From the NCBI GenBank assembly GCA_950097015.1, contig CATNEN010000001.1:25730001-25794000 (forward strand): a stretch of 64,000 bases of DNA, given 5' to 3'. Below, in pieces: positions 1,557 to 34,426 of this stretch (position 1 is its first letter; the number at the start of each line of letters is the position of its first letter). The notes under the pieces were generated by a model that searched no databases, was not told where the DNA came from, and worked only from the letters and a program-made list of their open reading frames with translations. This DNA comes from Macrostomum hystrix (lineage: Eukaryota; Animalia; Platyhelminthes). The translations under genes were made by a program, and so were the position numbers.

Positions 1557-3110
1557 CTATGGATTGCTGCTATGCAGAGCAGCAGTGCTAACCAAGAAAA
1601 ACTTCTTGTGCGTCTCCACCGTCCAGCTAGACATCTGCTGCGCCTGGCTTATTCCGTTCAGCCGGGGCTCCCTGAAGCCGCGAACCATGATGAAATTGAT
1701 CCTGTTAATCATCGAGACCACGTCCTCTTTGTGCGCGAACTTGTGGAGGGTGGTGCAGAGGGCTAAGATGAAGCGGCTGCCGTAAGGGCTGCAGAATCCT
1801 TGTTGGCCAGGGGCTGTGCAATGAGCCACAATCAGCCCACTTTGCTGCGGAATCACTTCCTGCAGAGGGTCCAGCAGTGGGGCCCCATATAATCCGCCAA
1901 CCATGCGTGCTAACTGCGCCATATTGCAAGCTGCTTCTGACTTTCTGGTCTCCGGGGTCACAGGCACATCTCGGCAACCCTGAATGATTACCAGCCTTGG
2001 CTTAGCTCTGACATTTTCCCCGGTTCTCATCAAGTTGATAATTTCGTACTCGCTCACTAGTCCAACACCTGCGCCATTGTCATAGTCGATGCCGCATATT
2101 CCACCCAGACGGCCGTGGGACATGATGACGAGAACACATGCTTCTCCATGTTCAGTTGTGTTAGCGAATGCCGACACTATGGCGTGAATTTCATCAGCAG
2201 TTTTGTTGAACTTCTCTTCCACGGTAAAGCTCATGAGCTGAAAAACGTGCTTTAAATTCTCATAGTCACTTATGCTAGACAATCTGTCATCAAGATTGTT
2301 ACGGAAGGTCATGTTGTGGATGATGAGCGCATGCTTCGTTGCTCGTGGTGGCTCACAGTAAACTAGATCGGCTGGAGGATCTTCGGAGGCCTTCAGAGTT
2401 TTGACAGTTTCTGGATCCAGCGCCTTGAGATGAGCGCCCTCGCCAAACTCTTTCGCCAGTTCTTTGTGCAGCAACTTGACTACCGGATGAGGCGCGTGAT
2501 ACTCATCCAACAGTCCATTGACAGATTTGATATTGAACTTTACGCTCTGCTCCTCAGTAATTTTGTATTGAATCAGGTGGCCAATTCCTTTGGAGAGCCA
2601 ACATGTTTCCTGCACTTCTCGCAAGTTGCGTACGAAATCCAGGGCCAATTTCCTGGTCTCGACGGCGATGCTCAGAATGGCCGAGTTGCGCAGCTTTTTT
2701 TTATTTTGGACCGGCCACTGCTGATTCTCGCAGTCGGCAGATTCAAAATTGTCACAATTTGAAATTCTGCAGTAGATCAGCAACTTCTGGACCGATTCGT
2801 CCACCTTCGAAAGCACTGTTGCAGTTTGGTCCAGCTCGCTTGCGCTTTTGTTGTCCGTCAGGACGAGGACAACTAGCTTCTTGACGCCCTTGGCGGCGGT
2901 GGCAGTGATTTTATCCTGGATGTCTTTGGCCTCCTTTGATTGGTCATATTCGATGCTGAAGCAGCAGTTGATTAGGTAAATCTCGTATTCTTCTAGTTCT
3001 TTCTCCTTGGCCGTCGAGAAGATGATAGCTCGGTAGACTTCAGATTCTCCACCGATGCTAGACGTGCCTGAAGGTTTATGGGATTCGGTATTTGACTTTC
3101 TAGTTGGCAC
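1557..3110 (-). CDS. Caspase-family (peptidase C14) protein, large terminal coding exon, with an N-terminal caspase-like pseudo-domain
   Basis: 517-codon ORF. The C-terminal half has ALIIHN, R..S..D, VLVIMSHG (catalytic His), KPRLVIIQGCRD (catalytic Cys), GSRFI and terminal KKFFL. No ATG occurs near the ORF 5' end, so the true start lies in upstream exon(s). Candidate small exons: 3381-3416 and 3511-3540. Confidence 0.9.
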   Translation of the reverse strand: MPTRKSNTESHKPSGTSSIGGESEVYRAIIFSTAKEKELEEYEIYLINCCFSIEYDQSKEAKDIQDKITATAAKGVKKLVVLVLTDNKSASELDQTATVLSKVDESVQKLLIYCRISNCDNFESADCENQQWPVQNKKKLRNSAILSIAVETRKLALDFVRNLREVQETCWLSKGIGHLIQYKITEEQSVKFNIKSVNGLLDEYHAPHPVVKLLHKELAKEFGEGAHLKALDPETVKTLKASEDPPADLVYCEPPRATKHALIIHNMTFRNNLDDRLSSISDYENLKHVFQLMSFTVEEKFNKTADEIHAIVSAFANTTEHGEACVLVIMSHGRLGGICGIDYDNGAGVGLVSEYEIINLMRTGENVRAKPRLVIIQGCRDVPVTPETRKSEAACNMAQLARMVGGLYGAPLLDPLQEVIPQQSGLIVAHCTAPGQQGFCSPYGSRFILALCTTLHKFAHKEDVVSMINRINFIMVRGFREPRLNGISQAQQMSSWTVETHKKFFLVSTAALHSSNP

Positions 3111-3926
3111 TTTCAGATTGAAACTGCAGGTACGGTAGTACGCTCGTTTATTTGTAATGTAACCAAACCTTACAATGGCAGCAAAATAGTAATTGATACC
3201 CGTAAGTAATAAACGGGTACTTAATTAAGCGTTGCGTAAATCTTCAAATGTATTCTGTACTATAAGATAAAACAGCCAAATTTCTTAATAAATCACTAAA
3301 AAGCTAAGGTTGGATTTTTTTCTTTGCGGCTGTCGTTCGTATCAGAAAAGCTTTTAAAATTCATTGCGCCTCAGTCTCACCAATGGGTTCCTGTTCGCTT
3401 GGCTGCTCCGATGCTTCTAAAATATATCAAATGTTTACAAAAAATCAATGTCTATTTGTCAAGTAATACACTTCACTGGATTCTGAGTGCATTGCAGAAA
3501 ACAAACTTACGCTCCTCAGATAATTTAACTTGAGCGTCACCTGTAGAGGTTAGTGTATTCGATACTTCACTACGAGTATCGCAGAATTCACTAATCGTAG
3601 CCATTTCCAAAGCTATAAATGAAGAAATATTTTCAGACCGCTGATTGCCTCGCTCAGTTTTGCCAAGTGCAACCCATTATATAGCGGCGCATATTGTCAG
3701 TGAAGCCAATGAGATCTGTGCTCATTGGAGTGAGGGCTATACGCAATCGAAAAGCAACTCTGGCACCCACAATCAAAGCGCAGGCGACTCAGTCATGCGA
3801 GCCGAAATTCTCAGATGTCTGCTGGCTTGTCACGAACATTTGTAACCTATCTGAAAAGTGTGTAAACTGTAAGAAGGCTGGCTGTATGTGCTCTTTAATT
3901 TTTATTATTTCTTTAGTTTGAATAAT

Positions 3927-4083: not shown

Positions 4084-4660
4084 TGTCACCTGGTAGTAGT
4101 GATTGTCACCTGTTAGAAGTGATTGTCACCTGTTAGAAGTGATCGTCACCTGTCAGTAGTGATCTTCACCTGTAAGTAGTGATTGTAACCTGTTAGTAGT
4201 GATTTTCACCTGTTAGAAGTGATTGTCACCTGTTAGAAGTGATCGTCACCTGTCAGTAGTGATCTTCACCTGTAAGTAGTGATTGTAACCTGTTAGTAGT
4301 GATTGTCACCTGTTAGAAGTGATTGTCACCTGTTAGAAGTGATTGTCACCTGTTAGAAGTGATCGTCACCTGTCAGTAGTGATTTTCACCTGTAAGTAGT
4401 GATTGTAACCTGTTAGTAGTGATTTTCACCTGTTAGAAGTGATTGTCACCTGTTAGAAGTGATCGTCACCTGTCAGTAGTGATTTTCACCTGTAAGTAGT
4501 GATTGTAACCTGTTAGTAGTGAGTGTCACCTGTTAGTAGTGAGTGTCACCTGTAACTAGTGAGCTTATGCTTGTTAGAAGGGAGTTTAAGCCTGTTAGAA
4601 GGTGAGGTCACCTGTTAGAAGGCAGAGTCACCTGTTAGAAGTGATTGTCACCTCTTAGAC
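4084..4660. repeat. 20-bp minisatellite (gattgtcacctgttagaagt), TCACCTGTTAG family
   Basis: Direct tandem copies visible; degenerate at the 3' end. Confidence 0.95.
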
Positions 4661-5300: not shown

Positions 5301-6397
5301 CTTGTTAGACAGGAGTGTCACCTGTTAGATAGGAGTGTCACCTGTTAGATAGGAGTGTCACCTGTTAGATAGGAGTGTTACCTGTTAGATAGGAGTGTCA
5401 CCTGTTAGACAGGAGTGTCACCTGTTAGACAGGAGTGTCACCTGTTAGACAGGAGTGTCACCTGTTAGACAGGAGTGTCACCTGTTAGACAGGAGTGTCA
5501 CCTGTTAGACAGGAGTGTCACCTGTTAGATAGGAGTGTCACCTGTTAGATAGGAGTGTTACCTGTTAGATAGGAGTGTCACCTGTTAGATAGGAGTGTCA
5601 CCTGTTAGATAGGAGTGTTACCTGTTAGATAGGAGTGTCACCTGTTAGATAGGAGTGTTACCTGTTAGATAGGAGTGTCACCTGTTAGATAGGAGTGTCA
5701 CCTGTTAGATAGGAGTGTTACCTGTTAGATAGGAGTGTCACCTGTTAGACAGGAGTGTCACCTGTTAGACAGGAGTGTCACCTGTTAGATAGGAGTGTCA
5801 CCTGTTAGATAGGAGTGTCACCTGTTAGATAGGAGTGTTACCTGTTAGATAGGAGTGTCACCTGTTAGATAGGAGTGTCACCTGTTAGACAGGAGTGTCA
5901 CCTGTTAGACAGGAGTGTCACCTGTTAGACAGGAGTGTCACCTGTTAGACAGGAGTGTCACCTGTTAGACAGGAGTGTCACCTGTTAGACAGGAGTGTCA
6001 CCTGTTAGATAGGAGTGTCACCTGTTAGATAGGAGTGTTACCTGTTAGATAGGAGTGTCACCTGTTAGATAGGAGTGTCACCTGTTAGATAGGAGTGTTA
6101 CCTGTTAGATAGGAGTGTCACCTGTTAGATAGGAGTGTTACCTGTTAGATAGGAGTGTCACCTGTTAGATAGGAGTGTCACCTGTTAGATAGGAGTGTTA
6201 CCTGTTAGATAGGAGTGTCACCTGTTAGACAGGAGTGTCACCTGTTAGACAGGAGTGTCACCTGTTAGACAGGAGTGTCACCTGTTAGACAGGAGTGTCA
6301 CCTGTTAGATAGGAGTGTCACCTGTTAGACAGGAGTGTCACCTGTTAGACAGGAGTGTCACCTGTTAGACAGGAGTGTCACCTGTTAGACAGGAGTC
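5301..6397. repeat. 20-bp minisatellite (cctgttagataggagtgtca), TCACCTGTTAG family
   Basis: About 55 near-perfect copies; the variant pattern recurs at 480-bp spacing. Confidence 0.97.
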
Positions 6398-6736
6398 AAG
6401 CAATATCACCTTCCACTTTAAACAGTTTCCACTTTAAACCAGTTTTTTAATAGCGCCACTTTAGTCTCAATTCGCCACCCTGAAGCTATTCATTATAATT
6501 TGAATGCATTTAATAAAAGGACATATTCTAGTTAGATGTGAATATGAAAAACCCTGCAGTTAAAAAACGCTTTAAAGGATAAGAAGATCTGCCCCGACTT
6601 TTTATTACAGTGAGTAATGTGGCTCCTGCAGGCTTGCCTTTCTTACATTTTTTCTTATTCTCTATCATGACACCCAAAATGTACAGGTTCAAACAGATAA
6701 TGTGACATGAGCAATTTTATAAATGCGGAGTTCCTA

Positions 6737-7710
6737 CTTCGATTCTAGCATTAGTTCCAGCTTCGATTCCAGCATTAGTTTCTGCTTCGATTCCAGCATT
6801 AGTTTCATCTTCGATTCCAGCATTAGTTTCTGATTCGATTCCAGCATTAGTTCCTGATTCGAATCCAGCATTGGTTCCTGATTCGATTCCAGCATTAGTT
6901 CCTGATTCGATTCCAGCATTAGTTTCTGCTTCGATTCCAGCATTAGTTTCTGCTTCGATTCCAGCATTGGTTCCTGATTCGATTCCAGCATTAGTTTCTG
7001 CTTCGATTCCAGCATTAGTTTCAGCTTCGATTCCAGCATTAGTTTCTGATTCGAATCCAGCATTAGTTCCTGATTCGATTCCAGCATTGGTTCCTGATTC
7101 GAATCCAGCATTAGTTCCTGATTCGAATCCAGCATTAGTTCCTGATTCGAATCCAGTATTAGTTCCTGATTCGAATCCAGCATTAGTTCCTGATTCGAAT
7201 CCAGCATTGGTTCCTGATTCGATTCCAGCATTAGTTCCTGATTCGAATCCAGCATTAGTTCCTGATTCGAATCCAGCATTAGTTCCTGATTCGATTCCAG
7301 CATTAGTTCCTGCTTCGAATCCAGTATTAGTTCCTGCTTCGAATCCAGTATTAGTTCCTGATTCGAATCCAGCATTAGTTCCTGATTCGAATCCAGCATT
7401 AGTTCCTGATTCGAATCCAGCATTAGTTCCTGATTCGAATCCAGCATTAGTTCCTGATTCGAATCCAGCATTAGTTCCTGATTCGATTCCAGCATTAGTT
7501 CCTGATTCGAATCCAGCATTAGTTCCTGATTCGATTCCAGCATTAGTTCCTGCTTCGAATCCAGTATTAGTTCCTGCTTCGAATCCAGTATTAGTTCCAG
7601 CTTCGATTCCAGTATTAGTTCCTGCTTCGATTCCAGCATTAGTTCCAGCTTCGAATCCAGTATTAGTTCCTGCTTCGAATCCAGTATTAGTTCCTGCTTC
7701 GATTCCAGCA
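6737..7710. repeat. 24-bp minisatellite (attagttcctgattcgaatccagc)
   Basis: Tandem copies; explains the spurious ORFs 6734-7753 and 6871-7713. Confidence 0.97.
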
Positions 7711-7726
7711 TAGGGCCACTACATAC

Positions 7727-8040
7727 TATGACCCGCTGCCAGCGAGGAGGCAATTCTGCCTATTTCACTGACTCCTGAGCGCACACGCACACAGATACCG
7801 AACGCAGGCACACGCTCACGCAGGTCTGTACAACTGCCCTGACTTTCACATTGTCAGGCAGTGTACACTTTCACTGTGCCTGAAGGTCGGCCCTCAAGGG
7901 CACAAATTGCACGACAACCCCCCAAGCCTTCTCTCCACGGCTGCGCCTCAAAATAAATGTGGCCTCGCCTCGATATCGAGCTCAGGGGCCTTGGTGTCAG
8001 AGCTCAGAGGCGAACACGTTAGCCGCTCTGCCACCGACCC
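7727..8040 (-). mobile_element. tRNA-derived SINE, family A, copy 1
   Basis: Minus strand begins gggtcggtggcagagcggctaac (A box) and has gagctcgatatc (B-box-like). Body is homologous to 9882-10181, 31525-31761 and 53905-54163. Confidence 0.8.
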
Positions 8041-11011: not shown

Positions 11012-14000
11012 ATGGCAGCCGTAGCAGCATGGCTGCCATTCGCACGGGCTGCAGCCATAGGCTGGGTGCCGGTCGCTCAGGGCCCGATGCCACCTCCGCC
11101 TGTGCGCGGTCGTGACTGCGGCAAATCCGACGAGAAACTGGTGATCAGCGTCTCAGGTAGGAAGTTTGTCACCTGGCGCAATACTCTGGAGAAGTATCCG
11201 GACACTCTGCTAGGCAGCGACGAGAAGGAGTACTTCTATGACGACGATGCAAGGCAGTATTTCTTCGATCGCGACCCGGATCTGTTCCGCCACATCCTGG
11301 CGTACTACCGCACGGGCAAGCTGCACTGTCCCAAGCACGAGTGCATCACGGCCTACGACGAGGAGCTGGCCTTCTTTGGCATTATGCCGGACATCATGGG
11401 CGACTGCTGCTACGAGGAATATCGTGACAGGAAGCGCGAGAACAATGAGCGTCTGATGGACGACAAAGACTCGGATACGGAGAACAAGATGCCCAACACT
11501 ACGCTGCGAGAGAAGCTGTGGTGCGCTTTTGAGAACCCCCAGTCCTCCACAGCCGCGCTAGTCATCTATTACGTCACAGGCTTCTTCATCGCCCTCTCCG
11601 TGTTGGCCAACGTTCTGGAAACCATTCCGTGCGGCATTGTGCCAGGAACCCTGTCCAACCCGGCGTGTGGCGATAAGTTTTCAGAGGGCTTCTTCTGCCT
11701 TGACACGGCCTGTGTGCTGATCTTCACTGTGGAATACGCCGCCAGGTTCTACGCTGCGCCTTATCGATTAAAACACATGCGGGCCGTGATGAGTGTCATC
11801 GATATCGTGGCCATCCTGCCCTATTATATCGGCCTGTTCATGCCCGATAACAAAGACCTCAGCGGCGCTTTTGTCACCCTGCGCGTCTTTCGAGTGTTTC
11901 GCATCTTTAAGTTCTCCAGGCACTCCATGGGTCTGAGAATTCTGGGTTACACACTGAAGTCGTGCGTCTCAGAGCTGGGCTTCCTGCTGTTCTCCATGAC
12001 CATGGCTGTCATTATCTTCGCCACGATCATGTTCTACGCTGAGAAGAACCAGCCCAAGACTACCTTCGTCTCCATCCCTGCAGCGTTTTGGTACACCATC
12101 GTTACCATGACGACGCTTGGGTGAGTCGTTCGAAATCGTCCTTTTTTGTCGTTTGAGGCACAAAAAAGGGTTTTTTATCAACTCATAATTACCTAAATTT
12201 TCCTACACTGACGCTCAGAAACATTATTTATTTATCATGAAAAATTTGTTTTCTTGCATGCCAGCTTTGAGTGTATAAACAGGTTTCCTAGCTTGCTCGC
12301 GCCTTGTCTATAAATAGATTGATTATATTCGTGTTAATTCGGTTAGCCCCTTTAAGGCTTTGCGTATAGCCTGCCTGCAGCTGACAGTAATCCAGTAGCA
12401 ATAATAGTGGATGCACATCTATTCACCCTGCTACACGCAGATGAAATCTCAGTAAAACTAGAGGCTCGCTGTGATGAAGCTGTGAGATTTATTCACCCGG
12501 CCCGCTCTCAGAATCCCAGAAATTCCTCATCTAGGAGGTGGGAAGTAAGGATTTGGCACGGCAACCCGCATCAGTATCTGAAACTCAAACAGTAGGGGGG
12601 CATGCATTGGGGCTTACATGCCGCTTGAATCAACTGTTGCCTCGGCTAGGAGAGATGGGGCCCGAACAGAGGCTTATTCGGACACACTATGCGGGATCTG
12701 ATTTATGAGCATAGTCCTGCGAGAAAAGTAGAGAAAAGATCCTTATTAATCCGCGTGATGTGCTTTCATTTTCCCATATCGCTCTGTCTCACCTCTGCTA
12801 CGGGAGGTAGCGAGTCATGTGTGTGCGTGAGCTGCGATAGTAGCTATATTGAGGGATGGTAGAAGGGAGGACTGGCTGCCGCCGCCTCATATCCCTGCTC
12901 TCTCTCTCTCTCGATATATTGATCGATGAGGCAAACGCTCTGGGGAATATGGGAGATCATGCTCTCTCCCTCCCTTATTCCCATGCACCTCCGTGTGTTG
13001 CTTCGCTCCCAAGCGCACGTTTGCCGTCCCGCCTCCTCCGCTGCCAGTCCTCTATGCTTAAACCCTCATTAACTGGCTTCCAGTTTCTCGCCCCGCGATT
13101 TGATACCTATGCCGCTAACTGTGTGCAACCCCCCCTGCTGATGTGAAGAGTTGCTGGAGTGATGGAGACAGCTGTGAGGCTGTGGCCTCAATTAATTCAA
13201 AGCCTAAACATCTGACTGCCTGTCCCATCTCAGCTAATATTTGAGCACCTGCTGTGCGCTTCACTCCTTTTTGTTGGCTGAGTTTTTGGTTCAAATCAGT
13301 CGGTTATCGTAGTGGAGAATGTGGCACCATTTTGCTAGTCACTGAGGGATACAGAACATTGGACAGTATCCAACTGAGGGATCAGTATGATACCGATCAT
13401 ACACTTCAGGGTCAGAAGAATGTATCAATCATTCACTTCAGGATCAATAGAATGTATCAATCATACACTTCAGGGTCAATATAATGTATCAATCATACAC
13501 TTCAGGGTCAGAAGAATGTATCAATCATTCACTTCAGGATCAATAGAATATATCAATCATACACTTCAGGGTCAGAAGAATGTATCAATCATTCACTTCA
13601 GGATCAATAGAATGTATCAATCATACACTTCAGGATCAATAGAATGTATCAATCATTCACTTCAGGGTCAGAAGAATGTATCAATCATTCACTTCAGGAT
13701 CAATAGAATATTTTATTGACCAATCATTCACTTTATGGTTAAATACTTTAGAGTCACTGTATGTTCTCAAAGGATTATAAGACCAAGGAGCATAAGCAAG
13801 AAAATCTGGGTTTCTTGTCGGTTGTATGTGATTTTCTACTTTCTTAAATGCAGGTAAGAAAGCAATTGTCATTCAATGCCAGTTTCCCTGAGAAAACAAC
13901 TGCTGCTTGTGATTACAAAAAATTGTCGTTACTAGCTTTCTCTGCTTCTAGGGAATTTCTTCTCGGGATTAGAGATCCATTAGTAATCCTAGAATGAAGG

Positions 14001-17000
14001 AAAACCCAGTCTACATTTTCCTAGAATGGCAAGGAAAGCTTGTTGAATTCGGGACTGTCCGTCAAATTTCTAAGGAAATTCAGCCTATCCTACCAGAGTT
14101 ACCTGAGACTGCAGGAAGATTAGATGGAGCTAGATCTCTGCTGGAGACAATTTGTAAGCAAATCCTCCGATTTAGAAAATCCAGGTCGCGTTCACTTCTG
14201 TGATTGACATTAACGGTTTCACACCCGTTAACCAAACGGAAAGCAGGTCAGTTTTCAGCTGAATTATACAAATTTGAAACCGTTAGCTCAGCCGCATAGC
14301 AACACGGAGCTGCAAAGTGTGACAGCTGAACATGCACTTTCATGCGCTAAAGTTTCCCTTTAGAGTTTTTTCAAAAACGCGAAATTTGTCAAACCCACCT
14401 ACCCGCCTCCGCGGCTGACTTCCTGACTGTGTGGGGCGAAGGCGCCTCATTTTGGGGGAAATGTCATACACGCACCAGCCCCTGTGTTGTCGTGGCTTTC
14501 TCCCCGTCCTGCGTCCCCTCTATGGCGATATTTAGTGGCTATGGAGGCGACTACCGAGACTTTCAGGCTGTCCGTATGTTGCTCTTTTGTTTTATTACTA
14601 TTCAGCCAATCAGCTTTCTGTTTCACTTCTCTCCCAGTGCTGCATGCTTCACAACTTTTGTCTGACTTCATTTTCGCAGTTGTCGATATTGTGTTTCAAA
14701 CTTTCAACAGTCTGGAAGCGGTGGGTGGAGCATCGACTTTTTATGAAGCGTTCTTCAACGCACGAGTACTTTAAACCTCGCTTAAAGTTTCATTGTGCTT
14801 TTATATGTTTTGCCTAAAACTGCGCAAAATATCTCGTGGCAGTACTAAATCCCGTATCCGCATACCCTATTAAGCTTACAGATCTCTGACATATCAAACC
14901 TAGATCAAGCTAAATCCTAGACCCCAATTCCCGATCCAACTCCCAGAATCTGATCCCACATCCTGCATCTTGATCCCACATCCTGCATCTTGATCCCACA
15001 TCCTGCATCTTGATCCCACATCCTGCATCTCTGATCCCACATCCTGCATCTTGATCCCACATCCTGCATCTCTGATCCCACATCCTGTATCTTGATCCCA
15101 CATCCTGCATCTCTGATCCCACATCCTGTATCTTGATCCCACATCCTGTATCTCTGATCCAACATCCTGCATCTCTGATCCCACATCCTGCATCTCTGAT
15201 CCCACATCCTGCATCTCTGATCCCACATCCTGCATCTTGATCCCACATCCTGCATCTTGATCCCACATCCTGCATCTCTGATCCCACATCCTGCATCTTG
15301 ATCCCACATCCTGCATCTCTGATCCCACATCCTGTATCTTGATCCCACATCCTGCATCTCTGATCCCACATCCTGTATCTTGATCCCACATCCTGTATCT
15401 CTGATCCAACATCCTGCATCTCTGATCCCACATCCTGCATCTCTGATCCCACATCCTGCATCTCTGATCCCACATCCTGCATCTCTGATCCCACATCCTG
15501 CATCTCTGATCCCACATCCTGCATCTTGATCCCACATCCTGCATCTCCGATCCCACATCCTGCATCTCTGATCCCACATCCTGCATCTCTGATCCCACAT
15601 CCTGTATCTCTGATCCCACATCCTGTATCTCTGATCCCACATCCTGCATCTCTGATCCCACATCCTGCATCTCTGATCCCACATCCTGCATCTCTGATCC
15701 CATACCCTGCATCTCTGATCCCAAATCCTAGATCTATGATTCTAGATTTCTAAACCCTGATCCTACATTTCATTTCATATATATTAGTGCATATTAACTT
15801 TTCTTGAACTCTTGTCTTTGTCTTCGAGAAAGACTTGTGTTTTACTGTTTTCTTCAGTTCTAACTACTCTCTTGGATGACAAGTGGTAATTGTTCTCCTC
15901 ATTTCACTCACCTAATTTGTGATCGTTGGAGCAAAAGACAAATTATAAAAGATTTAAAGGGCCAGAACCGGTTTGGCCCCGACTTTCCAACCTTATTAAC
16001 ATTTACCTTTCCCCTGCCGCGGGCGGTGCAAAAACGTGAAAAAGGGAAAAAGAGAAAAATTAATGGGCCCTGGCACACTGGGCAGCAATGTCCGTAATTG
16101 GTTTGCCATTCTGGCCCAGTCAGCCCACTTACTGTGCGCAGCTTCGAGGAAAAGACAGTGCGAGACGCGCGCAGTTACGACACCCTCACAATGCCTTTTG
16201 AAGCCTTCGGTTCTGCCTTCCCTTTGGACTGAGGAGCCGCAGATTGGTCAAAAATATTTCCAGGCCTGCATTCAAATCTCTCTGCAGCGAAGTTGTTAGT
16301 TTCGGAGATCTTTGAAGCAAAAATATGACGATTCCAGGGGGACTGGAAGAAAGACAGGAAAAGGTTAAAGCTGGAACGGCCCTGTGCTATGCTCCGTGTG
16401 TTCCAGCTGGAATGGCCCTGTGCTATGCTCCGTGTGTCCCAGCTGGAATGGCCCTGTGCTATGCTTCGTGTGTCCCAGCTGGAATGGCCCTGTGCTATGC
16501 TCCGTGTGTCCCAGCTGGAATGGCCCTGTGCTATGCTCCGTGTGTTCCAGCTGGAATGGCCCTGTGCTATGCTCCGTGTGTCCCAGCTGGAATGGCCCTG
16601 TGCTATGCTCCGTGTGTCCCAGCTGGAATGGCCCTGTGCTATGCTCCGTGTGTCCCAGCTGGAATGGCCCTGTGCTATGCTCCGTGTGTTCCAGCTGGAA
16701 TGGCCCTGTGCTATGCTCCGTGTGTCCCAGCTGGAATGGCCCTGTGCTATGCTCCGTGTGTTCCAGCTGGAATGGCCCTGTGCTATGCTCCGTGTGTCCC
16801 AGCTGGAATGGCCCTGTGCTATGCTCCGTGTGTTCCAGCTGGAATGGCCCTGTGCTATGCTCCGTGTGTCCCAGCTGGAATGGCCCTGTGCTATGCTCCG
16901 TGTGTCCCAGCTGGAATGGCCCTGTGCTATGCTCCGTGTGTCCCAGCTGGAACGGCCCTGTGCTATGCTCCGTGTGTTCCAGCTGGAATGGCCCTGTGCT

Positions 17001-20000
17001 ATGCTCCGTGTGTTCCAGCTGGAATGGCCCTGTGCTATGCTCCGTGTGTCCCAGCTGGAATGGCCCTGTGCTATGCTCCGTGTGTTCCAGCTGGAACGGC
17101 CCTGTGCTATGCTCCGTGTGTTCCAGCTGGAATGGCCCTGTGCTATGCTCCGTGTGTCCCATCTGGAATGGCCCTGTGCTATGCTCCGTGTGTTCCAGCT
17201 GGAATGGCCCTGTGCTATGCTCCGTGTGTTCCAGCTGGAACGGCCCTGTGCTATGCTCCGTGTGTCCCATCTGGAATGGCCCTGTGCTATGCTCCGTGTG
17301 TTCCAGCTGGAATGGCCCTGTGCTATGCTCCGTGTGTCCCATCTGGAATGGCCCTGTGCTATGCTCCGTGTGTTCCAGCTGGAATGGCCCTGTGCTATGC
17401 TCCGTGTGTCCCATCTGGAATGGCCCTGTGCTATGCTCCGTGTGTTCCAGCTGGAATGGCCCTGTGCTATGCTCCGTGTGTTCCAGCTGGAATGGCCCTG
17501 TGCTATGCTCCGTGTGTCCCATCTGGAATGGCCCTGTGCTATGCTCCGTGTGTTTCAGCTGGAATGGCCCTGTGCTATGCTCCGTGTGTTCCAGCTGGAA
17601 TGGCCCTGTGCTATGCTCCGTGTGTTCCAGCTGGAATGGCCCTGTGCTATGCTCCGTGTGTTCCAGCTGGAATGGCCCTGTGCTATGCTCCGTGTGTTCC
17701 AGCTGGAATGGCCCTGTGCTATGCTCCGTGTGTTCCAGCTGGAATGGCCCTGTGCTATGCTCCGTGTGTTCCAGCTGGAACGGCCCTGTGCTATGCTCCG
17801 TGTGTTCCAACTGGAACGGCCCTGTGCTATGCTCCGTGTGTCCCAGCTGGAATGGCCCTGTGCTATGCTCCGTGTGTTCCAGCTGGAACGGCCCTGTGCT
17901 ATGCTCCGTGTGTTCCAGCTGGAACGGCCCTGTGCTATGCTCCGTGTGTTCCAGCTGGAATGGCCCTGTGCTATGCTCCGTGTGTCCCATCTGGAATGGC
18001 CCTGTGCTATGCTCCGTGTGTTCCAGCTGGAATGGCCCTGTGCTATGCTCCGTGTGTTCCAGCTGGAATGGCCCTGTGCTATGCTCCGTGTGTTCCAGCT
18101 GGAATGGCCCTGTGCTATGCTCCGTGTGTCCCAGCTGGAATGGCCCTGTGCTATGCTCCGTGTGTCCCAGCTGGAATGGCCCTGTGCTATGCTCCGTGTG
18201 TTCCAGCTGGAATGGCCCTGTGCTATGCTCCGTGTGTTCCAGCTGGAATGGCCCTGTGCTATGCTCCGTGTGTTCCAGCTGGAATGGCCCTGTGCTATGC
18301 TCCGTGTGTTCCAGCTGGAATGGCCCTGTGCTATGCTCCGTGTGTTCCAGCTGGAATGGCCCTGTGCTATGCTCCGTGTGTTCCAGCTGGAATGGCCCTG
18401 TGCTATGCTCCGTGTGTTCCAGCTGGAATGGCCCTGTGCTATGCTCCGTGTGTTCCAGCTGGAATGGCCCTGTGCTATGCTCCGTGTGTTCCAGCTGGAA
18501 TGGCCCTGTGCTATGCTCCGTGTGTTCCAGCTGGAATGGCCCTGTGCTATGCTCCGTGTGTCCCAGCTGGAATGGCCCTGTGCTATGCTCCGTGTGTTCC
18601 AGCTGGAACGGCTCTGTGTACATTTTGCCATTTCATCTCTCTCTCTCTTTTCAAATTTGTGTCTCTGATCTGCCCATAGTTGATTCCTAGCAAAGCTGCA
18701 CTACATGCTCATGCATCTTCTCTCTCTTCAATCCGGTATCTGTCCATTGTTCATTCATGTTCAAGGGTGACCAATTCAAATATTCATAGGGCTAATTGCG
18801 TCTATTGAATTAATTTCCAGCTTTTGAACGAATTAATTTGCAACATTGTTGGCTCAGTATTTCTCTGCCATATTTCTCCACTGCATTTTAGGTCAATTAT
18901 ATCATCGTATTTTATTCAAACTGAAATCCTGACTCAGATTATGAAACTGTGCTATTTAATGGGTTAGAAACGAACTTGAAAATCCGCCTGACATTACCGA
19001 TAGATTTTTTGCATTGATACTGTGGTCTGCAACAGAATTGGTTGAACTCCTGCTGCACAGTCTGTGACAGAATTGGTTGAACTCTTGCTGCACAGTCTGT
19101 GACAGAATTGGTTGAACTCCTGCTGCACAGTCTGTGACAGAATTGGTTGAGCTCTTGCTGCACAGTCTGTGACAGAATTGGTTGAACTCTTGCTGCACAG
19201 TCTGTGACAGAATCGGTTGAACTCCTGCTGCACAGTCTGTGACAGAATTGGTTGAACTCTTGCTGCACAGTCTGTGACAGAATTGGTTGAACTCTTGCTG
19301 CACAGTCTGTGACAGAATTGGTTGAACTCTTGCTGCACAGTCTGTGACAGATTTGGTTGAACTCTTGCTGCACAGTATGTGGCAGAATCGGTTGAACTCT
19401 TGCTGCACAGTCTGTGACAGAATTGGTTGAACTCTTGCTGCACAGTCTGCAACAGAATCGGTTGAACTCTTGCTGCACAGTCTGTGACAGAATTGGTTGA
19501 ACTCTTGCTGCACAGTCTGTGGCAGAATTGGTTGAACTCCTGCTGCACAGTCTGTGACAGAATTGGTTGAACTCTTGCTGCACAGTCTGTGACAGAATCG
19601 GTTGAACTCTTGCTGCACAGTCTGTGACAGAATTGGTTGAGCTCTTGCTGCACAGTCTGCAACAGAATCGGTTGAACTCTTGCTGCACAGTCTGTGGCAG
19701 AATTGGTTGAACTCCTGCTGCACAGTCTGTGACAGAATCGGTTGAACTCTTGCTGCACAGTCTGTGACAGAATCGGTTGAACTCTTGCTGCACAGTCTGC
19801 AACAGAATCGGTTGAACTCTTGCTGCACAGTCTGTGACAGAATCGGTTGAGCTCTTGCTGCACAGTCTGTGACAGATTTGGTTGAACTCTTGCTGCACAG
19901 TCTGTGACAGAATTGGTTGAACTCTTGCTGCACAGTCTGTGACAGAATCGGTTGAACTCCTGCTGCACAGTCTGTGACAGAATCGGTTGAGCTCTTGCTG

Positions 20001-27793: not shown

Positions 27794-28071
27794 GGGCAAC
27801 CCTCAAGGGGCAACCCTCAAGGGGCAACCCTCAAGGGGCAACCCTCAATGGGCAACCCTCAATGGGCAACCCTCAAGGGACAACCCTCAATGGGCAACCC
27901 TCAAGGAGGCGACCGTCAAGGGCAACCCTCAATGGGCAACCCTCAAGGAGGCAACCCTCAAGGGGCAACCCTCAATGGGCAACCCTCAAGGGGCAACCCT
28001 CAAGGGGCAACCCTCAATGGGCAACCCTCAAGGGGCAACCCTCAAGGAGGCGACCTGTCAAGGGCAACCCT
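27794..28071. repeat. 14-bp minisatellite (gggcaaccctcaag)
   Basis: Tandem copies. Confidence 0.93.
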
Positions 28072-28492
28072 CTTAGGTGCAGAACCCCTGCGAAAGCCGC
28101 GAAGGGCAAACTTGCAAGAGACAAACATTGAAGGTCAGCCCTTATCCTAAGGTACTAGCAGTCTTTTGTCGTGAATTCTTAGCTCTTTCACTATTCAAAT
28201 GCTAAATTCTAGTCTCAAAATTTTTTGCGAAGCATTAACTTATTTTACCCGATAGAACCGCTGTGAGCCCTGCAAGTTTTCGTCTTTAACCAGCAGGTGT
28301 GAATGCCTATCTCTCTGACAGTCTTATTTGTGAAGCATTTTCCCTTCATATATGTATCAAGTAACTCTTGAAAATTATCTGTCAAATCTTGAATTTCTTT
28401 AAATTGTGATCTGAATGACCTTTTGATGCACCTATTGCACCTTGTACAACGTTTAATTTGTTCATTTAAACAGAAAGGATTCGCTTTCACTA

Positions 28493-29652
28493 TGTGAGAC
28501 AGTAGGGAAGGGAGAGTGAGACAGTAGGGAAGGGAGAGTGTGAGACAGTAGGGAAGGGAGAGTGTGAGACAGTAGGGAAGGGAGAGTGTGAGACAGTAGG
28601 GAAGGGAGAGTGTGAGACAGTAGGGAAGGGAGAGTGTGAGACAGTAGGGAAGGGAGAGTGTGAGACAGTAGGGAAGGGAGAGTGTGAGACAGTAGGGAAG
28701 GGAGAGTGTGAGACAGTAGGGAAGGGAGAGTGTGAGACAGTAGGGAAGGGAGAGTGTGAGACAGTAGGGAAGGGAGAGTGTGAGACAGTAGAGAAGGGAG
28801 AGTGTGAGACAGTAGGGAAGGGAGAGTGTGAGACAGTAGGGAAGGGAGAGTGTGAGACAGTAGGGAAGGGAGAGTGTGAGACTGTAGGGAAGGGAGAGTG
28901 TGAGACAGTAGGGAAGGGAGAGTGTGAGACAGTAGGGAAGGGAGAGTGTGAGACAGTAGGGAAGGGAGAGTGTGAGACAGTAGGGAAGGGAGAGTGTGAG
29001 ACAGTAGGGAAGGGAGAGTGTGAGACTGTAGGGAAGGGAGAGTGTGAGACAGGAGGGAAGGGAGAGTGTGAGACTGTAGGGAAGGGAGAGTGTGAGACAG
29101 TAGGGAAGGGAGAGTGTGAGACTGTAGGGAAGGGAGAGTGTGAGACAGTAGGGAAGGGAGAGTGTGAGACAGTAGGGAAGGGAGAGTGTGAGACAGTAGG
29201 GAAGGGAGAGTGTGAGACAGTAGGGAAGGGAGAGTGTGAGGCAGTAGGGAAGGGAGAGTGTGAGACAGTAGGGAAGGGAGAGTGTGAGACAGTAGGGAAG
29301 GGAGAGTGTGAGACAGTAGGGAAGGGAGAGTGTGAGACAGTAGGGAAGGGAGAGTGTGAGGCAGTAGGGAAGGGAGAGTGTGAGACAGTAGGGAAGGGAG
29401 AGTGTGAGACAGTAGGGAAGGGAGAGTGTGAGACAGTAGGGAAGGGAGAGTGTGAGACAGTAGGGAAGGGAGAGTGTGAGACAGTAGGGAAGGGAGAGTG
29501 TGAGACAGTAGGGAAGGGAGAGTGTGAGGCAGTAGGGAAGGGAGAGTGTGAGACAGTAGGGAAGGGAGAGTGTGAGGGAAGGGAGAGTGTGAGACAGTAG
29601 GGAAGGGAGAGTGTGAAGGAAGGGAGAGTGTGAGGGAAGGGAGAGTGTGAGG
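28493..29652. repeat. 24-bp purine-rich minisatellite (gggaagggagagtgtgagacagta)
   Basis: About 48 copies. Confidence 0.97.
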
Positions 29653-30074
29653 AGCCAGTGATAAGATAGTATTTTATATTTCACCTGAGCGCACACCATA
29701 CTACTGTAAATGCTCGCAGCTGCGAAATCTACCCAATTTCTAGTCCCAATTCGTCAGTGTTGAACGCGCCTTTGCTCTGTGTTTTCCTACAGTCAATAAT
29801 TCATTAACTCAGCTTGACCTTGTGACTATGAAATTAAAATACCAAGCTGCAGTATGATCAATACTAATAAATGATTGTTACATGTTATCCTACACTCTAT
29901 GACACTTCTGTATGACCGCATTTTGACTGGACATTTTAGCAGGACATTTTGTTCTGGACTTAGTTTACATTATTTTCTACTGAAATTTTAAACATAGGCT
30001 TTGTGGAATCAGGGTAAAGAGACATTCTCACTAAATCTCTGGCGAATCTTATCTAATCTCTCCGAATCACTTGC

Positions 30075-30752
30075 CGATCTCACCCTGTCTCAATCAATCT
30101 CTAGCTAATCTCACCTAGTACCAATCAATCTCTAACCAATCTCACCTTTGTCTCAATCAATCTCTAACCAATCTCACATTTGTCTCAATCAATCTCTAAC
30201 CTATCTCACATTTGTCTCAATCAATCTCTAACCAATCTCACATTTGTCTCAATCAATCTCTAACCAATCTCACATTTGTCTCAATCAATCTCTAACCAAT
30301 CTCACATTTGTCCCAATCAATCTCTAACCAATCTCACCTTTGTCTCAATCAATCTCTAACCAATCTCACCTTTGTCTCAATCAATTTCTAGCCAATCTCA
30401 CATTTGTCTCAATCAATTTCTAGCCAATCTCACCTTTGTCTCAATCAATTTCTAGCCAATCTCACATTTGTCTCAATCAATTTCTAGCCAATCTCACCTT
30501 TGTCTCAATCAATTTCTAGCCAATCTCACATTTGTCTCAATCAATTTCTAGCCAATCTCACCTTTGTCTCAATCAATCTCTAGCCAATCTCACATTTGTC
30601 CCAATCAATCTCTAACCAATCTCACCTTTGTCTCAATCAATCTCTAACCAATCACACCTTTGTCTCAATTAATTTCTAACCAATCACACCTTTGTCTCAA
30701 TTAATTTCTAGCCAATCTCACATTTGTCTCAATTTATCTCCATCCAATCTCA
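30075..30752. repeat. 32-bp minisatellite (tcaatcaatctctaaccaatctcacatttgtc)
   Basis: About 21 copies, ending about 35 bp before the SDR start codon. Confidence 0.95.
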
Positions 30753-30786
30753 CCGCATCTCCATCCCTTGCAGTCCAGTGTGCGGC

Positions 30787-32313
30787 ATGTCTCTCCTGTG
30801 TCAGCTGTGCAGCATCCCAGTGTCGTGGGTCGCCCTGGTCCTCATCGTGTCCTACCTGGCCTACCAATTCTACGACAGGAAGCGCCGAGCCAGGCGCGCC
30901 GATGTTCCCGACGACTGGCGCGCGGTCCTCGTCACTGGCTGCGACAGCGGCTTCGGTCGACTGCTGGCCACCCGCCTGGCCGGCAAGGGCTGGCTGGTGC
31001 TGGCCGGATGTCTCAGACAGGCCGCGGTGGAGGAGCTGTCGGCCAAGTGTGACGCTAACCTTCTACCGATTCGCATTGACGTCACGGACGTTGACTCGGT
31101 GAATGCGGCCGTGTCCAAGGCTGACGCAGCGCTGAAGGAGCGCAGGATGGCCGGCCTGTGGGGCCTTGTCAACAACGCCGGCGTCAGCGGCAGCCGGGTC
31201 GGCCCGGCAGAATTTCTCAGCGCCGAAGACTATCAGCAGGTGTTCGCCGTGAATGTGTACGGCATCGCCAGCGTGACCAGGGCCTGCCTGCCGCTGATGA
31301 GGCGCCTGCCTCGAGCCAGGCTTGTCAACATGTCCAGCATCTTCGGCCGGTACGCCGTGCCCGGCACCGCCGCCTATTCCGCATCCAAGTACGCTGTTCA
31401 GGTGAGCTGCGGGTGGGCTGGGAGCAGCTGGCAGTCCTTGAGTTCACCCAGCTGCGAAATCGGTACCCCTGGGCTTTTAAACTAAATATTTTCAGGAGCG
31501 CTGTGGGCGCTGGTGCACCATCTTGGCTGTGGTGGCAATAGAGCCGCAGCTAACGAGTTATAATGTATTTGCCTCTCGCCCCGAGGTCTCTGAGTTCGAT
31601 TCCGCGGCGAGGCCACATTCATTTGGGCTTGGGGGCTTGTCGTGCAATTTACGCCCTTGTGATCCATCCTCCAAGGCACAGTGAAAGTGTACACACCTGT
31701 GTGAGCGTGTGCCTGCGTACGGTACTTGTGAGCGTGTGTGCTCAGGAGTCAGCTAAATGGGCGCAGTTGGTCTACTGTCACTACATAGTGTGCGCGTTGC
31801 ATAATAGTCTATCTGCTATCTATCTACGAGCATTATCTAGAGAGAAGTAAATTGGATAGACGGAGCTCGAGTCCTAGAACCCTTCAATACGCTGCATCGC
31901 AGGCCCTGAGCGACTGCTACCGCCGTGAGCTGAGTCAGTTCGGCATCCAGGTGGCCTGCGTGGAGCCGGGCTTCCACCGGACCCCCATCACAGACAAGGC
32001 CGCCCTGACCCGCGCCATCAACCAAGGCTTCCAGGAGGCGCCACAGCAGTTGCGCGACGCCTACGGCGAGTCCTTCCGACAGGAGAGCGTCGAAAGACTG
32101 GACGACTTGCTGCGGTTCTGCTCGGACAGACTGGACAAAGTTGTTGACGCCTACGAGGAAGCCCTGACCTCCCAGCACCCGCGCTGTCGCTACATGGTGG
32201 GCTGGGACGCCAGGCTGCTGTACTGGCCGCTGTCTGTGCTGCCCGAGTGCGTTGGCGACTTTCTGGTGGCCCTGCGGCTGCCCAAGGCCGCCGGGGCTAG
32301 GAAGGCCAAGTAG
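30787..32313 (+). CDS. Short-chain dehydrogenase/reductase, RDH/HSD17B6/BDH1-like (SDR9C type), two exons
   Basis: Exons 30787-31401 and 31903-32313 (CAG|gtgagc ... gcag|GCC). N-terminal hydrophobic anchor, TGCDSGFG, GLWGLVNNAG, NMSS, YSASK, VEPG, RYMVGWDA. Confidence 0.93.
31525..31761 (+). mobile_element. tRNA-derived SINE, family A, copy 3 (in SDR intron)
   Basis: B box gagttcgattcc; homologous body with internal deletions. Confidence 0.78.
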
Positions 32314-32322
32314 GGCCTCCCT

Positions 32323-34088
32323 GAAGGGCGAGAATAGGAATTCTGGGAAGGGCGAGAATAGGAATTCTGGGAAGGGCGAGAATAGGAATTCTGGGAAGGG
32401 CGAGAATAAGAAGGCTGGGAAGGGCGAGAATAAGAAGGTTGGGAAGGGCGAGAATAAGAAGGTTGGGAAAGGCGAGAATAAGAAGGTTGGGAAGGGCGAG
32501 AATAGGAATTCTGGGAAGGGCGAGAATAGGAATTCTGGGAAGGGCGAGAATAGGAATTCTGGGAAGGGCGAGAATAAGAAGGTTGGGAAGGGCGAGAATA
32601 AGAAGGTTGGGAAAGGCGAGAATAAGAAGGTTGGGAAGGGCGAGAATAGGAATTCTGGGAAGGGCGAGAATAGGAATTCTGGGAAGGGCGAGAATAAGAA
32701 GGTTGGGAAAGGCGAGAATAAGAAGGTTGGGAAGGGCGAGAATAAGAAGGCTGGAAAGGGCGAGAATAAGAAGGTTGGGAAGGGCGAGAATAAGAAGGCT
32801 GGGAAGGGCGAGAATAAGAAGGATGGGAAGGGCGAGAATAGGAATTCTGGGAAGGGCGAGAATAGGAATTCTGGGAAGGGCGAGAATAGGAATTCTGGGA
32901 AGGGCGAGAATAGGAATTCTGGGAAGGGCGAGAATAAGAAGGCTGGGAAGGGCGAGAATAAGAAGGTTGGGAAGGGCGAGAATAAGAAGGTTGGGAAAGG
33001 CGAGAATAAGAAGGTTGGGAAGGGCGAGAATAAGAAGGTTGGGAAAGGCGAGAATAAGAAGGTTGGGAAGGGCGAGAATAGGAATTCTGGGAAGGGCGAG
33101 AATAAGAAGGTTGGGAAAGGCGAGAATAAGAAGGTTGGGAAGGGCGAGAATAGGAATTCTGGGAAGGGCGAGAATAGGAATTCTGGGAAGGGCGAGAATA
33201 GGAATTCTGGGAAGGGCGAGAATAGGAATTCTGGGAAGGGCGAGAATAAGAAGGCTGGGAAGGGCGAGAATAAGAAGGTTGGGAAGGGCGAGAATAAGAA
33301 GGTTGGGAAAGGCGAGAATAAGAAGGTTGGGAAGGGCGAGAATAAGAAGGCTGGGAAGGGCGAGAATAAGAAGGTTGGGAAGGGCGAGAATAAGAAGGTT
33401 GGGAAGGGCGAGAATAAGAAGGTTGGGAAGGGCGAGAATAAGAAGGATGGGAAGGGCGAGAATAGGAAGGCTGGGAAGGGCGAGAATAGGAAGGATGAGA
33501 AGGGCGAGAATAAGAAGGTTGGGAAAGGCGGGAATAAGAAGGTTGGGAATGGCGAGAATAATAAGGTTGGGAAGGGCGAGAATAAGAAGGTTGGGAAGGG
33601 CGAGAATAAGGAGGCTGGGAAGGGCGAGAATAGGAAGGCTGGGAAAGGCGAGAATAGGGAGGTTGTGGAGGGCGAAAATAAGAAGATTGGGAAAGGCGGG
33701 AATAGGAAGGCTGGGAAGGGCGAGAATAGGAAGGCTGGGAAGGGCGAGAATAGGAAGGATGAGAAGGGCGAGAATAAAAAGGTTGGGAAAGGCGGGAATA
33801 AGAAGGTTGGGAATGGCGAGAATAAGAAGGTTGGGAAGGGCGAGAATAAGAAGGTTGGGAAGGGCGAGAATAAGGAGGCTGGGAAGGGCGAGAATAGGAA
33901 GGCTGGGAAGGGCGAGAATAGGGAGGTTGTGGATGGCGAAAATAAGAAGATTGGGAAAGGCGGGAATAGGAAGGCTGGGAAGGGCGAGAATAAGAAGGCT
34001 GGGAAGGGTGAGAATAAGAAGGTTGGGAAGGGCGAGAGTAAGAAGGTTGGGAAGGGCGAGAATAAGGAGGTTCGGAAAGGCGAGAATC
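32323..34088. repeat. 24-bp purine-rich minisatellite (gggaagggcgagaataagaaggtt / ...ggaattct)
   Basis: About 73 copies starting about 10 bp after the SDR stop; the 3' part is degenerate with a 264-bp duplication. Confidence 0.97.
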
Positions 34089-34426
34089 TATATAAACAAA
34101 AATGACGATAATAGTATTTTAATCAACTCTTCAATCAACAACACTGAAGTGCTTCGTGATAATTACAAACCTATTTGTCAGTAATCTACTAGTAGTCTTG
34201 ACAATCGGGCTAAAGTTAATTTTAAACAAAATTATATTAAGATTTTATTGCTATTTTTTATATTGATTTGCTTTTCTACACGTGCAGTTTTCTGCTGGTG
34301 GTGCTAGTGACAACAAAGTCTGGGTTCCTTACATAAAATGTTTTTAATAAAAAATTCCGCTTAGTATACTGATCTTGCTTCACACAACTAACTAGGCCAA
34401 GTTGAACAGTTGTATTTTGTTATTTA

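Follow-up and report, generated by a model that had tools for sequence, protein, structure and literature searches.

Separase, a protease of clan CD, carries a dead caspase-like domain and an active caspase-like domain in a single chain. It belongs to family C50, is very large, and contains helical repeats; the packing of its domains is not that of the β6 dimer of caspases. In the heterodimer of cFLIP-L and procaspase-8 (PDB 3H11, 3H13), cFLIP-L is a separate polypeptide recruited via tandem death effector domains (DEDs). In the coral Acropora millepora, a single chain of caspase-X (AmCaspase Xa-d; Moya et al. 2016) contains two caspase domains, one inactive and one active; the two were modeled with a β6-β6 contact like that of cFLIP-L/procaspase-8, and caspase-X without the inactive domain killed more HeLa cells, showing that the dead domain restrains activity (PMC4715348). 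Mammalian caspase-16 has a CASc-like prodomain, without an intersubunit linker, Cys, or His, ahead of an active caspase domain (Eckhart et al. 2008; reviewed in PMC12292325). An intramolecular interaction between that prodomain and the catalytic domain has been stated as a hypothesis, for which there is as yet no biochemistry, and no other caspase was said to have a CASc-like prodomain (PMC12292325). Caspases annotated with two CASc domains occur in mussels (Mytilus coruscus; PMC10967218), and in a survey of lophotrochozoan caspases the sole unusual prodomain in the flatworm Macrostomum lignano was kinase-like (PMC11463336). Here we describe a gene of Macrostomum hystrix whose product probably joins a trimmed pseudo-caspase domain to a caspase domain. 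The gene lies on the minus strand at positions 1557-3110 of the window, a stretch of 64,000 nucleotides from contig CATNEN010000001.1 of assembly GCA_950097015.1 (positions 25,730,001 to 25,794,000 of the forward strand).

The explanation that best accounts for the results as a whole, and in which we have moderate confidence, is that this gene belongs to a family of Macrostomum-specific caspases with a tandem architecture, in which a trimmed pseudo-caspase domain precedes a caspase domain and, more tentatively, would serve as its built-in partner. From N to C terminus, the protein would consist of a short disordered leader, a trimmed caspase-like domain of about 180 residues, a flexible linker of about 55 residues, and a canonical C14 caspase domain. 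The trimmed domain would have lost the catalytic His and the substrate-binding loops and kept a Cys-Arg pair at the end of β4. The features are as follows; structural predictions were made with AlphaFold2 (AF2), and their confidence is given as the predicted local distance difference test score (pLDDT).

1557-3110, minus strand: open reading frame (ORF) of 517 codons, apparently one large exon, from the ORF listing.
3124-3130, minus strand: candidate 3′ splice acceptor CCTGCAG; the exon would begin at 3123, in phase 1.
3042-3110, minus strand: leader, residues 1-23, predicted to be disordered (pLDDT about 30) and not conserved among paralogues.
2511-3041, minus strand: predicted pseudo-caspase domain (caspase-like, predicted dead), residues ~24-200, from AF2, fold searches, and hhalign.
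2853-2855, minus strand: Asp86, at the end of β3 of the N-terminal domain and at the catalytic-His position of caspases, from the family alignment.
2769-2771, minus strand: Cys114 (LLIYCRIS), at the end of β4 of the N-terminal domain, placed by hhalign on the catalytic Cys of QxCR.
2349-2510, minus strand: interdomain linker, residues 201-254, modeled with low confidence.
2415-2417, minus strand: Asp232 in the linker, in an x-L/V-D motif, invariant in the five-row family alignment A2.
1599-2336, minus strand: Peptidase_C14 caspase domain, residues 259-504, from Pfam PF00656.
2115-2117, minus strand: catalytic His332 (IMSHG), aligned to the dyad of CED-3 and caspase-3.
1974-1976, minus strand: catalytic Cys379 (IQGCRD), aligned to the same dyads.
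1791-1793, minus strand: Cys440, at the S1-pocket arginine position (caspase-1 Arg341, "SWR"), from the alignment of the genome's caspase domains.

The 517-codon open frame is real and ends at a stop codon at 1557-1559. Its C-terminal part is a member of Peptidase_C14: residues 259-504 matched PF00656 with an E value of 1.5e-25 and 90.7 bits against a cut-off of 21.4, and the closest PDB sequences were CED-3 (2e-15) and caspase-9. The domain has both members of the His-Cys dyad in their usual contexts (SHG and QxCRx), and it has kept Arg276 (the position of caspase-1 Arg179) and Gln377 of QxCR. The pair of S1-pocket arginines that goes with Asp at P1 is incomplete in the window gene, which has Cys440 at the Arg341 position. 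Of the 14 other caspase domains of the genome that were aligned, 11 have Arg there, including that of the paralogue L004, and L024 has Lys; Cys is found in the window gene and in the pseudogene copy L002. The caspase fold and the family membership stand, canonical Asp specificity is doubtful, and with Cys in place of the S1-pocket Arg either the Asp specificity or the activity of this copy is probably altered.

A reading of this locus made from the sequence alone (the sequence-only reading) had proposed that the N-terminal ~180 residues are not an all-helical CARD or DED but a second, dead caspase fold that pairs element by element with the protein's own catalytic domain. The first part of this proposal was borne out. 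Two independent AF2 runs, one with the N-terminal domain (N-domain) alone and one with the full-length protein, gave an α/β structure for residues ~24-200 and agreed on the order of elements, β1-α1-β2-α2-β3-α3-β4-loop-β5-α4. In the model, five parallel strands alternate with helices (β1 26-32, α1 37-48, β2 52-56, α2 61-72, β3 78-85, α3 91-101, β4 108-116, then a loop, β5 143-150, and α4 153-174), and the loops are short compared with those of a real caspase. No death-fold prodomain (CARD, DED, or PYD) was matched in Pfam, and the alternation of strands and helices is not that of an all-helical six-helix bundle. A TIR domain likewise had no Pfam match; it appeared in Foldseek only at rank 33 (E 7e-3) and not at all in the VIA top 50.

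When the structural matches of the N-domain were re-aligned, clan-CD proteases or pseudo-proteases filled the first 7 places among representative chains and the first 38 among entries, and the best matches were caspases and pseudo-caspases. Generic Rossmann-like folds scored 8-9 in this ranking. The top 50 included Legumain, GPI8, Yca1, a CHAT protease, and the caspase-like GSU0716, with no separase chain among them, and the order of the matches mirrored that obtained with the bona fide C-terminal domain (C-domain). Judged on the model, the N-domain has a predicted caspase (caspase-hemoglobinase) fold.

The element-by-element pairing with the catalytic domain was reproduced by profile-profile alignment, at a level weakly above chance. 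An hhalign comparison of 8 N-domains with 30 caspase domains of the genome gave an E value of 8e-4 and a probability of 24% across about 200 colinear columns, and alignments A5 and A6 matched with an E value of 0.0035 across β1-β4. The pairs recovered were RAIIFS with ALIIHN (β1), α1-β2, α2, LVLTD with VIMSH (β3), and LLIYCR with IIQGCR (β4). As a null distribution, the five β-α units of the N-domain were shuffled, so that strands and helices still alternated in the generic way. Of 120 permutations, the native order ranked 1-2, with a score of 30.3 vs 19.3 +/- 4.5; statistically, the N-vs-C profile signal is weakly above chance.

Both hhalign alignments placed Cys114-Arg of the N-domain on the catalytic Cys-Arg. 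Cys114 is invariant in alignment A2 and is kept in six of the seven genomic N-domains aligned (the exception is locus L018). At the end of β3, where caspases have the catalytic His, no aligned family member has a His; the window gene has Asp86 and Asn87, the replacement of His by Asp that had been noted from the sequence. The S1/L1, post-His hairpin, and L3 loop elements appear as deletions in the alignment, in agreement with the earlier claim that the active-site loops are trimmed off. Without the β3 His and with its L1, post-His, and L3 loops gone, the N-domain would be a trimmed caspase core that cannot be catalytic; Cys114 is kept, but a Cys without a His is no dyad.

Several results weigh against the reading of a tandem pseudo-caspase and caspase. 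The structural evidence comes from a single N-domain model of low-to-moderate confidence (mean pLDDT 53.9; 60-83 in the core; poor after about residue 172). In Foldseek, the N-domain had no PDB match at E ≤ 1e-3; generic flavodoxin-like folds (type II dehydroquinase, PurE) headed the list, and caspases ranked 19th, 25th, and 37th. After re-alignment, the gap between caspases and the best non-caspase row was small (12.2 vs 10.9). In sequence comparisons, the N-terminal part (residues 1-240) gave only chance-level rows against Pfam and PDB sequences, both alone and as a profile; BLASTP found no similarity between it and its own C-domain; hhalign gave no match between the N and C profiles built from the family itself; and the broad-profile hhalign probabilities of 9-24% are not significant by usual standards. 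The N-domain is not recognizably similar in sequence to a caspase domain. The full-length AF2 model and the complex prediction offer no evidence of an interface between the N- and C-domains. Finally, the window gene has no in-frame start codon, and its closest paralogue is a frameshifted pseudogene.

The alternative to be weighed beside the fold results gives the N-domain an independent origin as an interaction domain with a generic three-layer α/β fold, flavodoxin-like or Rossmannoid, that has only the parallel 2-1-3-4-5 sheet in common with caspases; the domain would then be a lineage-specific recruitment or oligomerization prodomain that functionally replaces CARD or DED. Four observations speak against this alternative: the unbroken run of clan-CD proteins at the top of the structural re-alignment (7 chains, 38 entries), the absence of TIR from the VIA top 50, the colinearity of the weak profile alignment over ~200 columns with the conserved Cys-Arg on the catalytic Cys-Arg, and the advantage of the native β-α order over permuted units. 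We regard a generic fold as rather unlikely and judge that the N-domain is probably a caspase-like pseudo-protease. The sequence-only reading as a whole is upheld in part; its dead caspase fold is supported by the structural matches and a weak profile signal, and Foldseek at E ≤ 1e-3 and the sequence searches gave nothing.

Homologues with the same architecture, suggested earlier as something to look for, were found. An exhaustive phmmer search of 1.84 billion representatives with the N-domain returned only the M. lignano protein PAA82799.1 / A0A267GBW8 and one bacterial PKD-repeat protein; word-indexed homologue searches, three in all, yielded that M. lignano protein or no match, and a search of the ESM Atlas gave no usable match. 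The M. lignano protein has the same architecture as the window gene and is the sole outside homologue found. The bacterial protein (P0002, E 2e-7) was taken as compositional, its match being to a short repeated VVLTVTDDSSATD-type stretch. A Raftlin match, in one of five members, was at chance level (16 bits vs a cut-off of 29). A profile search with alignment A3 was dropped; two full-length rows had brought in caspase columns, and all matches were to those.

The family was also searched for in the genome of M. hystrix (220,453,370 bp, 42 contigs). N-domains occur at no fewer than nine loci, always directly upstream of a caspase domain in a frame of ~500 codons. Six copies (L041, L032, L005, L018, L004, and the frameshifted L002) form a tandem cluster at C1:22730900-22749500, 3 Mb from the window; further copies are located on C25 (L024) and on C38 (upstream of L014). 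The N-domain copy at C38:12920898-12921440 (minus strand) matches the family profile with an E value of 2.6e-13 and lies directly upstream of a caspase frame; its one in-frame TAG could be an intron or a break. The divergent subgroup L018 and L032 is linked to the subgroup of the window gene by hhalign (E 1.6e-5, probability 79%). In a tree of 23 caspase domains of the genome, from which rows with <170 aligned residues were left out, all nine N-domain-bearing rows, representing eight genomic copies with the window gene entered twice, formed one split with support of 100/99. This single split shows that the fusion of N-domain and caspase arose once and then expanded.

Both domains are under constraint. 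Between the window gene and L004, the proportion of non-synonymous differences (pN) was 0.41 in the N-domain and 0.33 in the C-domain, vs a saturated proportion of synonymous differences (pS) of 0.77; because non-synonymous differences are far fewer than synonymous ones, we conclude that the N-domain has been maintained by selection. In two members of the family, L005 and L041, the C-domain has neither the catalytic His nor the catalytic Cys any longer, so that both of their caspase folds are dead. PF00656 was matched at the exon level 81 times across the genome, which points to a very large expansion of caspases in M. hystrix, on the order of tens of genes. Several other caspase frames of ~450-600 codons have N-terminal regions, among them those at C2:7348654, C7:2677870, C1:17046266, and C5:4192862; the front part of L008 is Q-rich and disordered, and that of L019 is helical.

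The sequence-only reading had not recognized this architecture among animal caspases. That claim fails, since chains of this kind had been published for caspase-X (PMC4715348) and caspase-16 (PMC12292325), and double-CASc proteins for mussels (PMC10967218). The architecture is not new for animal caspases; it appears to be unreported for flatworms. Like the flatworm family, caspase-X has an N-terminal dead domain followed by an active one and is lineage-restricted and multi-copy. It differs in being 721 residues long with both domains recognized by sequence (2 x Peptidase_C14), whereas the flatworm N-domain has ~180 residues, keeps its Cys, and escapes detection by Pfam, PDB-sequence, and BLAST searches. 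The caspase-16 prodomain lacks both Cys and His and, as the product of an exon duplication, clearly resembles its own catalytic domain in sequence; the flatworm N-domain has no significant similarity of this kind, retains Cys-Arg, and is apparently encoded with the caspase domain in one large exon. In contrast to cFLIP-L, the flatworm protein has no death-fold domain, and its two caspase folds are covalently linked. Separase resembles it in pairing dead and active caspase-like domains in one chain but is far larger and belongs to C50. The bivalve double-CASc caspases are likewise invertebrate proteins with duplicated caspase domains from expanded gene families; they are known from gene-model domain annotation only, both domains are detectable by sequence, and no claim on activity or inactivity has been made. 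What distinguishes the flatworm family is a dead domain pared down to a minimal core, which sequence methods miss and in which the Cys-Arg motif persists. The phmmer search, having found only the M. lignano protein, argues for an origin separate from those of caspase-X and caspase-16, and, no homology to the caspase-X family having been detected, an origin independent of caspase-X is likely.

The start of the gene bears on whether this copy is functional. The open frame extends upstream to a stop at 3225-3227, with zero in-frame ATG codons between that stop and Met267, the first in-frame Met, which falls inside the caspase domain. The GTG start listed for the frame is an artefact of a bacterial ORF caller. 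The acceptor motif at 3124-3130 is conserved in the closest paralogue as CTTCTAG, and sequence conservation decays upstream of it. These two features together imply a 5′ exon carrying the ATG, and they suggest that a predicted upstream exon supplies the start codon of the window gene. Where the closest paralogue has its start ATG, the window gene has ATC, in another frame, and comparison of the two upstream regions found shared satellites and a few short conserved blocks and no ATG-bearing exon. In M. lignano the spliced leader (SL) ends in ATG (PMC8629364). Donation of the ATG by a spliced leader was considered and rejected: the strong upstream acceptors do not share the frame of the ORF, and the one that does, an AAG with exon start 3095, is weak.

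Three satellite arrays are located directly upstream of the gene, at window positions 4084-4658 (20-bp unit, 29 copies), 5303-6396 (20-bp unit, 55 copies), and 6729-7711 (24-bp unit, 41 copies). The same arrays lie in the same order upstream of the pseudogene paralogue at C1:22.75 Mb; the duplication that created both copies therefore spanned at least 7 kb. The 24-bp repeat also gives rise to spurious long "ORFs" at window 6734-7753, which have weak DUF2345/Gp5 Pfam matches.

Independently of how its prodomain folds, the window copy might be a non-proteolytic or decaying paralogue, either a pseudogene of recent origin or a decoy that has stopped cleaving after Asp. The missing in-frame ATG and the ATC at the paralogue's start favor this view, as do Cys440 in the S1 pocket, the loss of both catalytic residues in L005 and L041, and the state of the sister L002, which is frameshifted and gives a ratio of non-synonymous to synonymous substitution (dN/dS) of 0.6-0.7, an ambiguous value. 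Against it, a frame of 555 codons has been preserved at a dS of about 0.2-0.3 from this already frameshifted sister; His332, Cys379, Arg276, and the Gln of QxCR are intact; and the conserved acceptor-like motif points to a 5′ exon upstream. We consider a non-proteolytic or decaying copy rather unlikely.

If the gene encodes a working tandem protein, as we favor, the question becomes how the two domains are arranged. The full-length AF2 model had a pLDDT of 49.6, which is too poor for domain packing to be read, and a complex prediction of the N-domain with the caspase domain gave an ipSAE of 0.00, which speaks neither for nor against contact. The analogy of caspase-X in corals and of cFLIP-L bound to procaspase-8 suggests that the dead domain would pair with the live domain across the β6 edge and act as a built-in partner that sets protease activity. 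Asp232 in the linker is a possible processing site, and cleavage there could release the dead domain. That the N-domain acts in cis on the catalytic domain is a tentative proposal that we hold with less than even confidence.

The pseudo-caspase might instead work in trans and pair with the catalytic domain of another chain or family member, giving chains or mixed pairs among the ~9 paralogues. cFLIP-L acts in trans on caspase-8 and so provides a precedent. The double-dead family members could serve only as partners or decoys, and the long, flexible linker would allow arrangements other than cis. However, the results with caspase-X lacking its N-terminal domain and the modeling of that protein favor a cis interaction, and we think action in trans improbable.

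A broader possibility, which we also consider a long way from probable, is that a dead domain serving as built-in dimer partner would make these proteins adaptor-independent single-chain enzymes, and that the expanded family would form a lineage-specific network of self-regulating proteases and decoys. Such a network would include the two double-dead members and the window copy with its altered S1 pocket. It could replace the FADD/DED extrinsic pathway, which has been reported lost in flatworms (PMC11463336).

Elsewhere in the window, positions 11012-12124 (plus strand) contain an exon that encodes the N-terminal portion of a voltage-gated potassium channel of the Shal type (Kv4), matching the Shal-type N-terminus, BTB_2, and Ion_trans. 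On the minus strand, two open frames for reverse transcriptase (RVT_1), at 35830-37131 and 47197-48504, are presumably retroelement copies. Low-complexity stretches occupy 16325-18690 and 28000-34200; one of them has long overlapping frames on both strands, and the other has an extreme guanine-cytosine (GC) skew of 0.52-0.61 in 2-kb windows. Pfam matches to FH1, Gp5_trimer_C, and keratin B2 at 24.4-25.6 kb look compositional.

The family would bear on two published statements and correct both: that of the 2025 caspase-16 review, that no other caspase has a CASc-like prodomain, and that of the lophotrochozoan survey, in which the only unusual prodomain in Macrostomum was kinase-like. How caspases are activated without death-fold adaptors is a live question, and for caspase-X and caspase-16 there is almost no biochemistry. 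Macrostomum is a tractable flatworm genus with transgenesis and RNA interference (RNAi), and its genome offers natural variants for comparison: the canonical L004, the window gene with its S1 Arg-to-Cys change, and the double-dead L005 and L041. A dead domain whittled down to a core of ~180 residues suggests that only the core sheet and the interface need to be kept, and a third, independently evolved chain of dead and live caspase domains would show that this design is recurrent.

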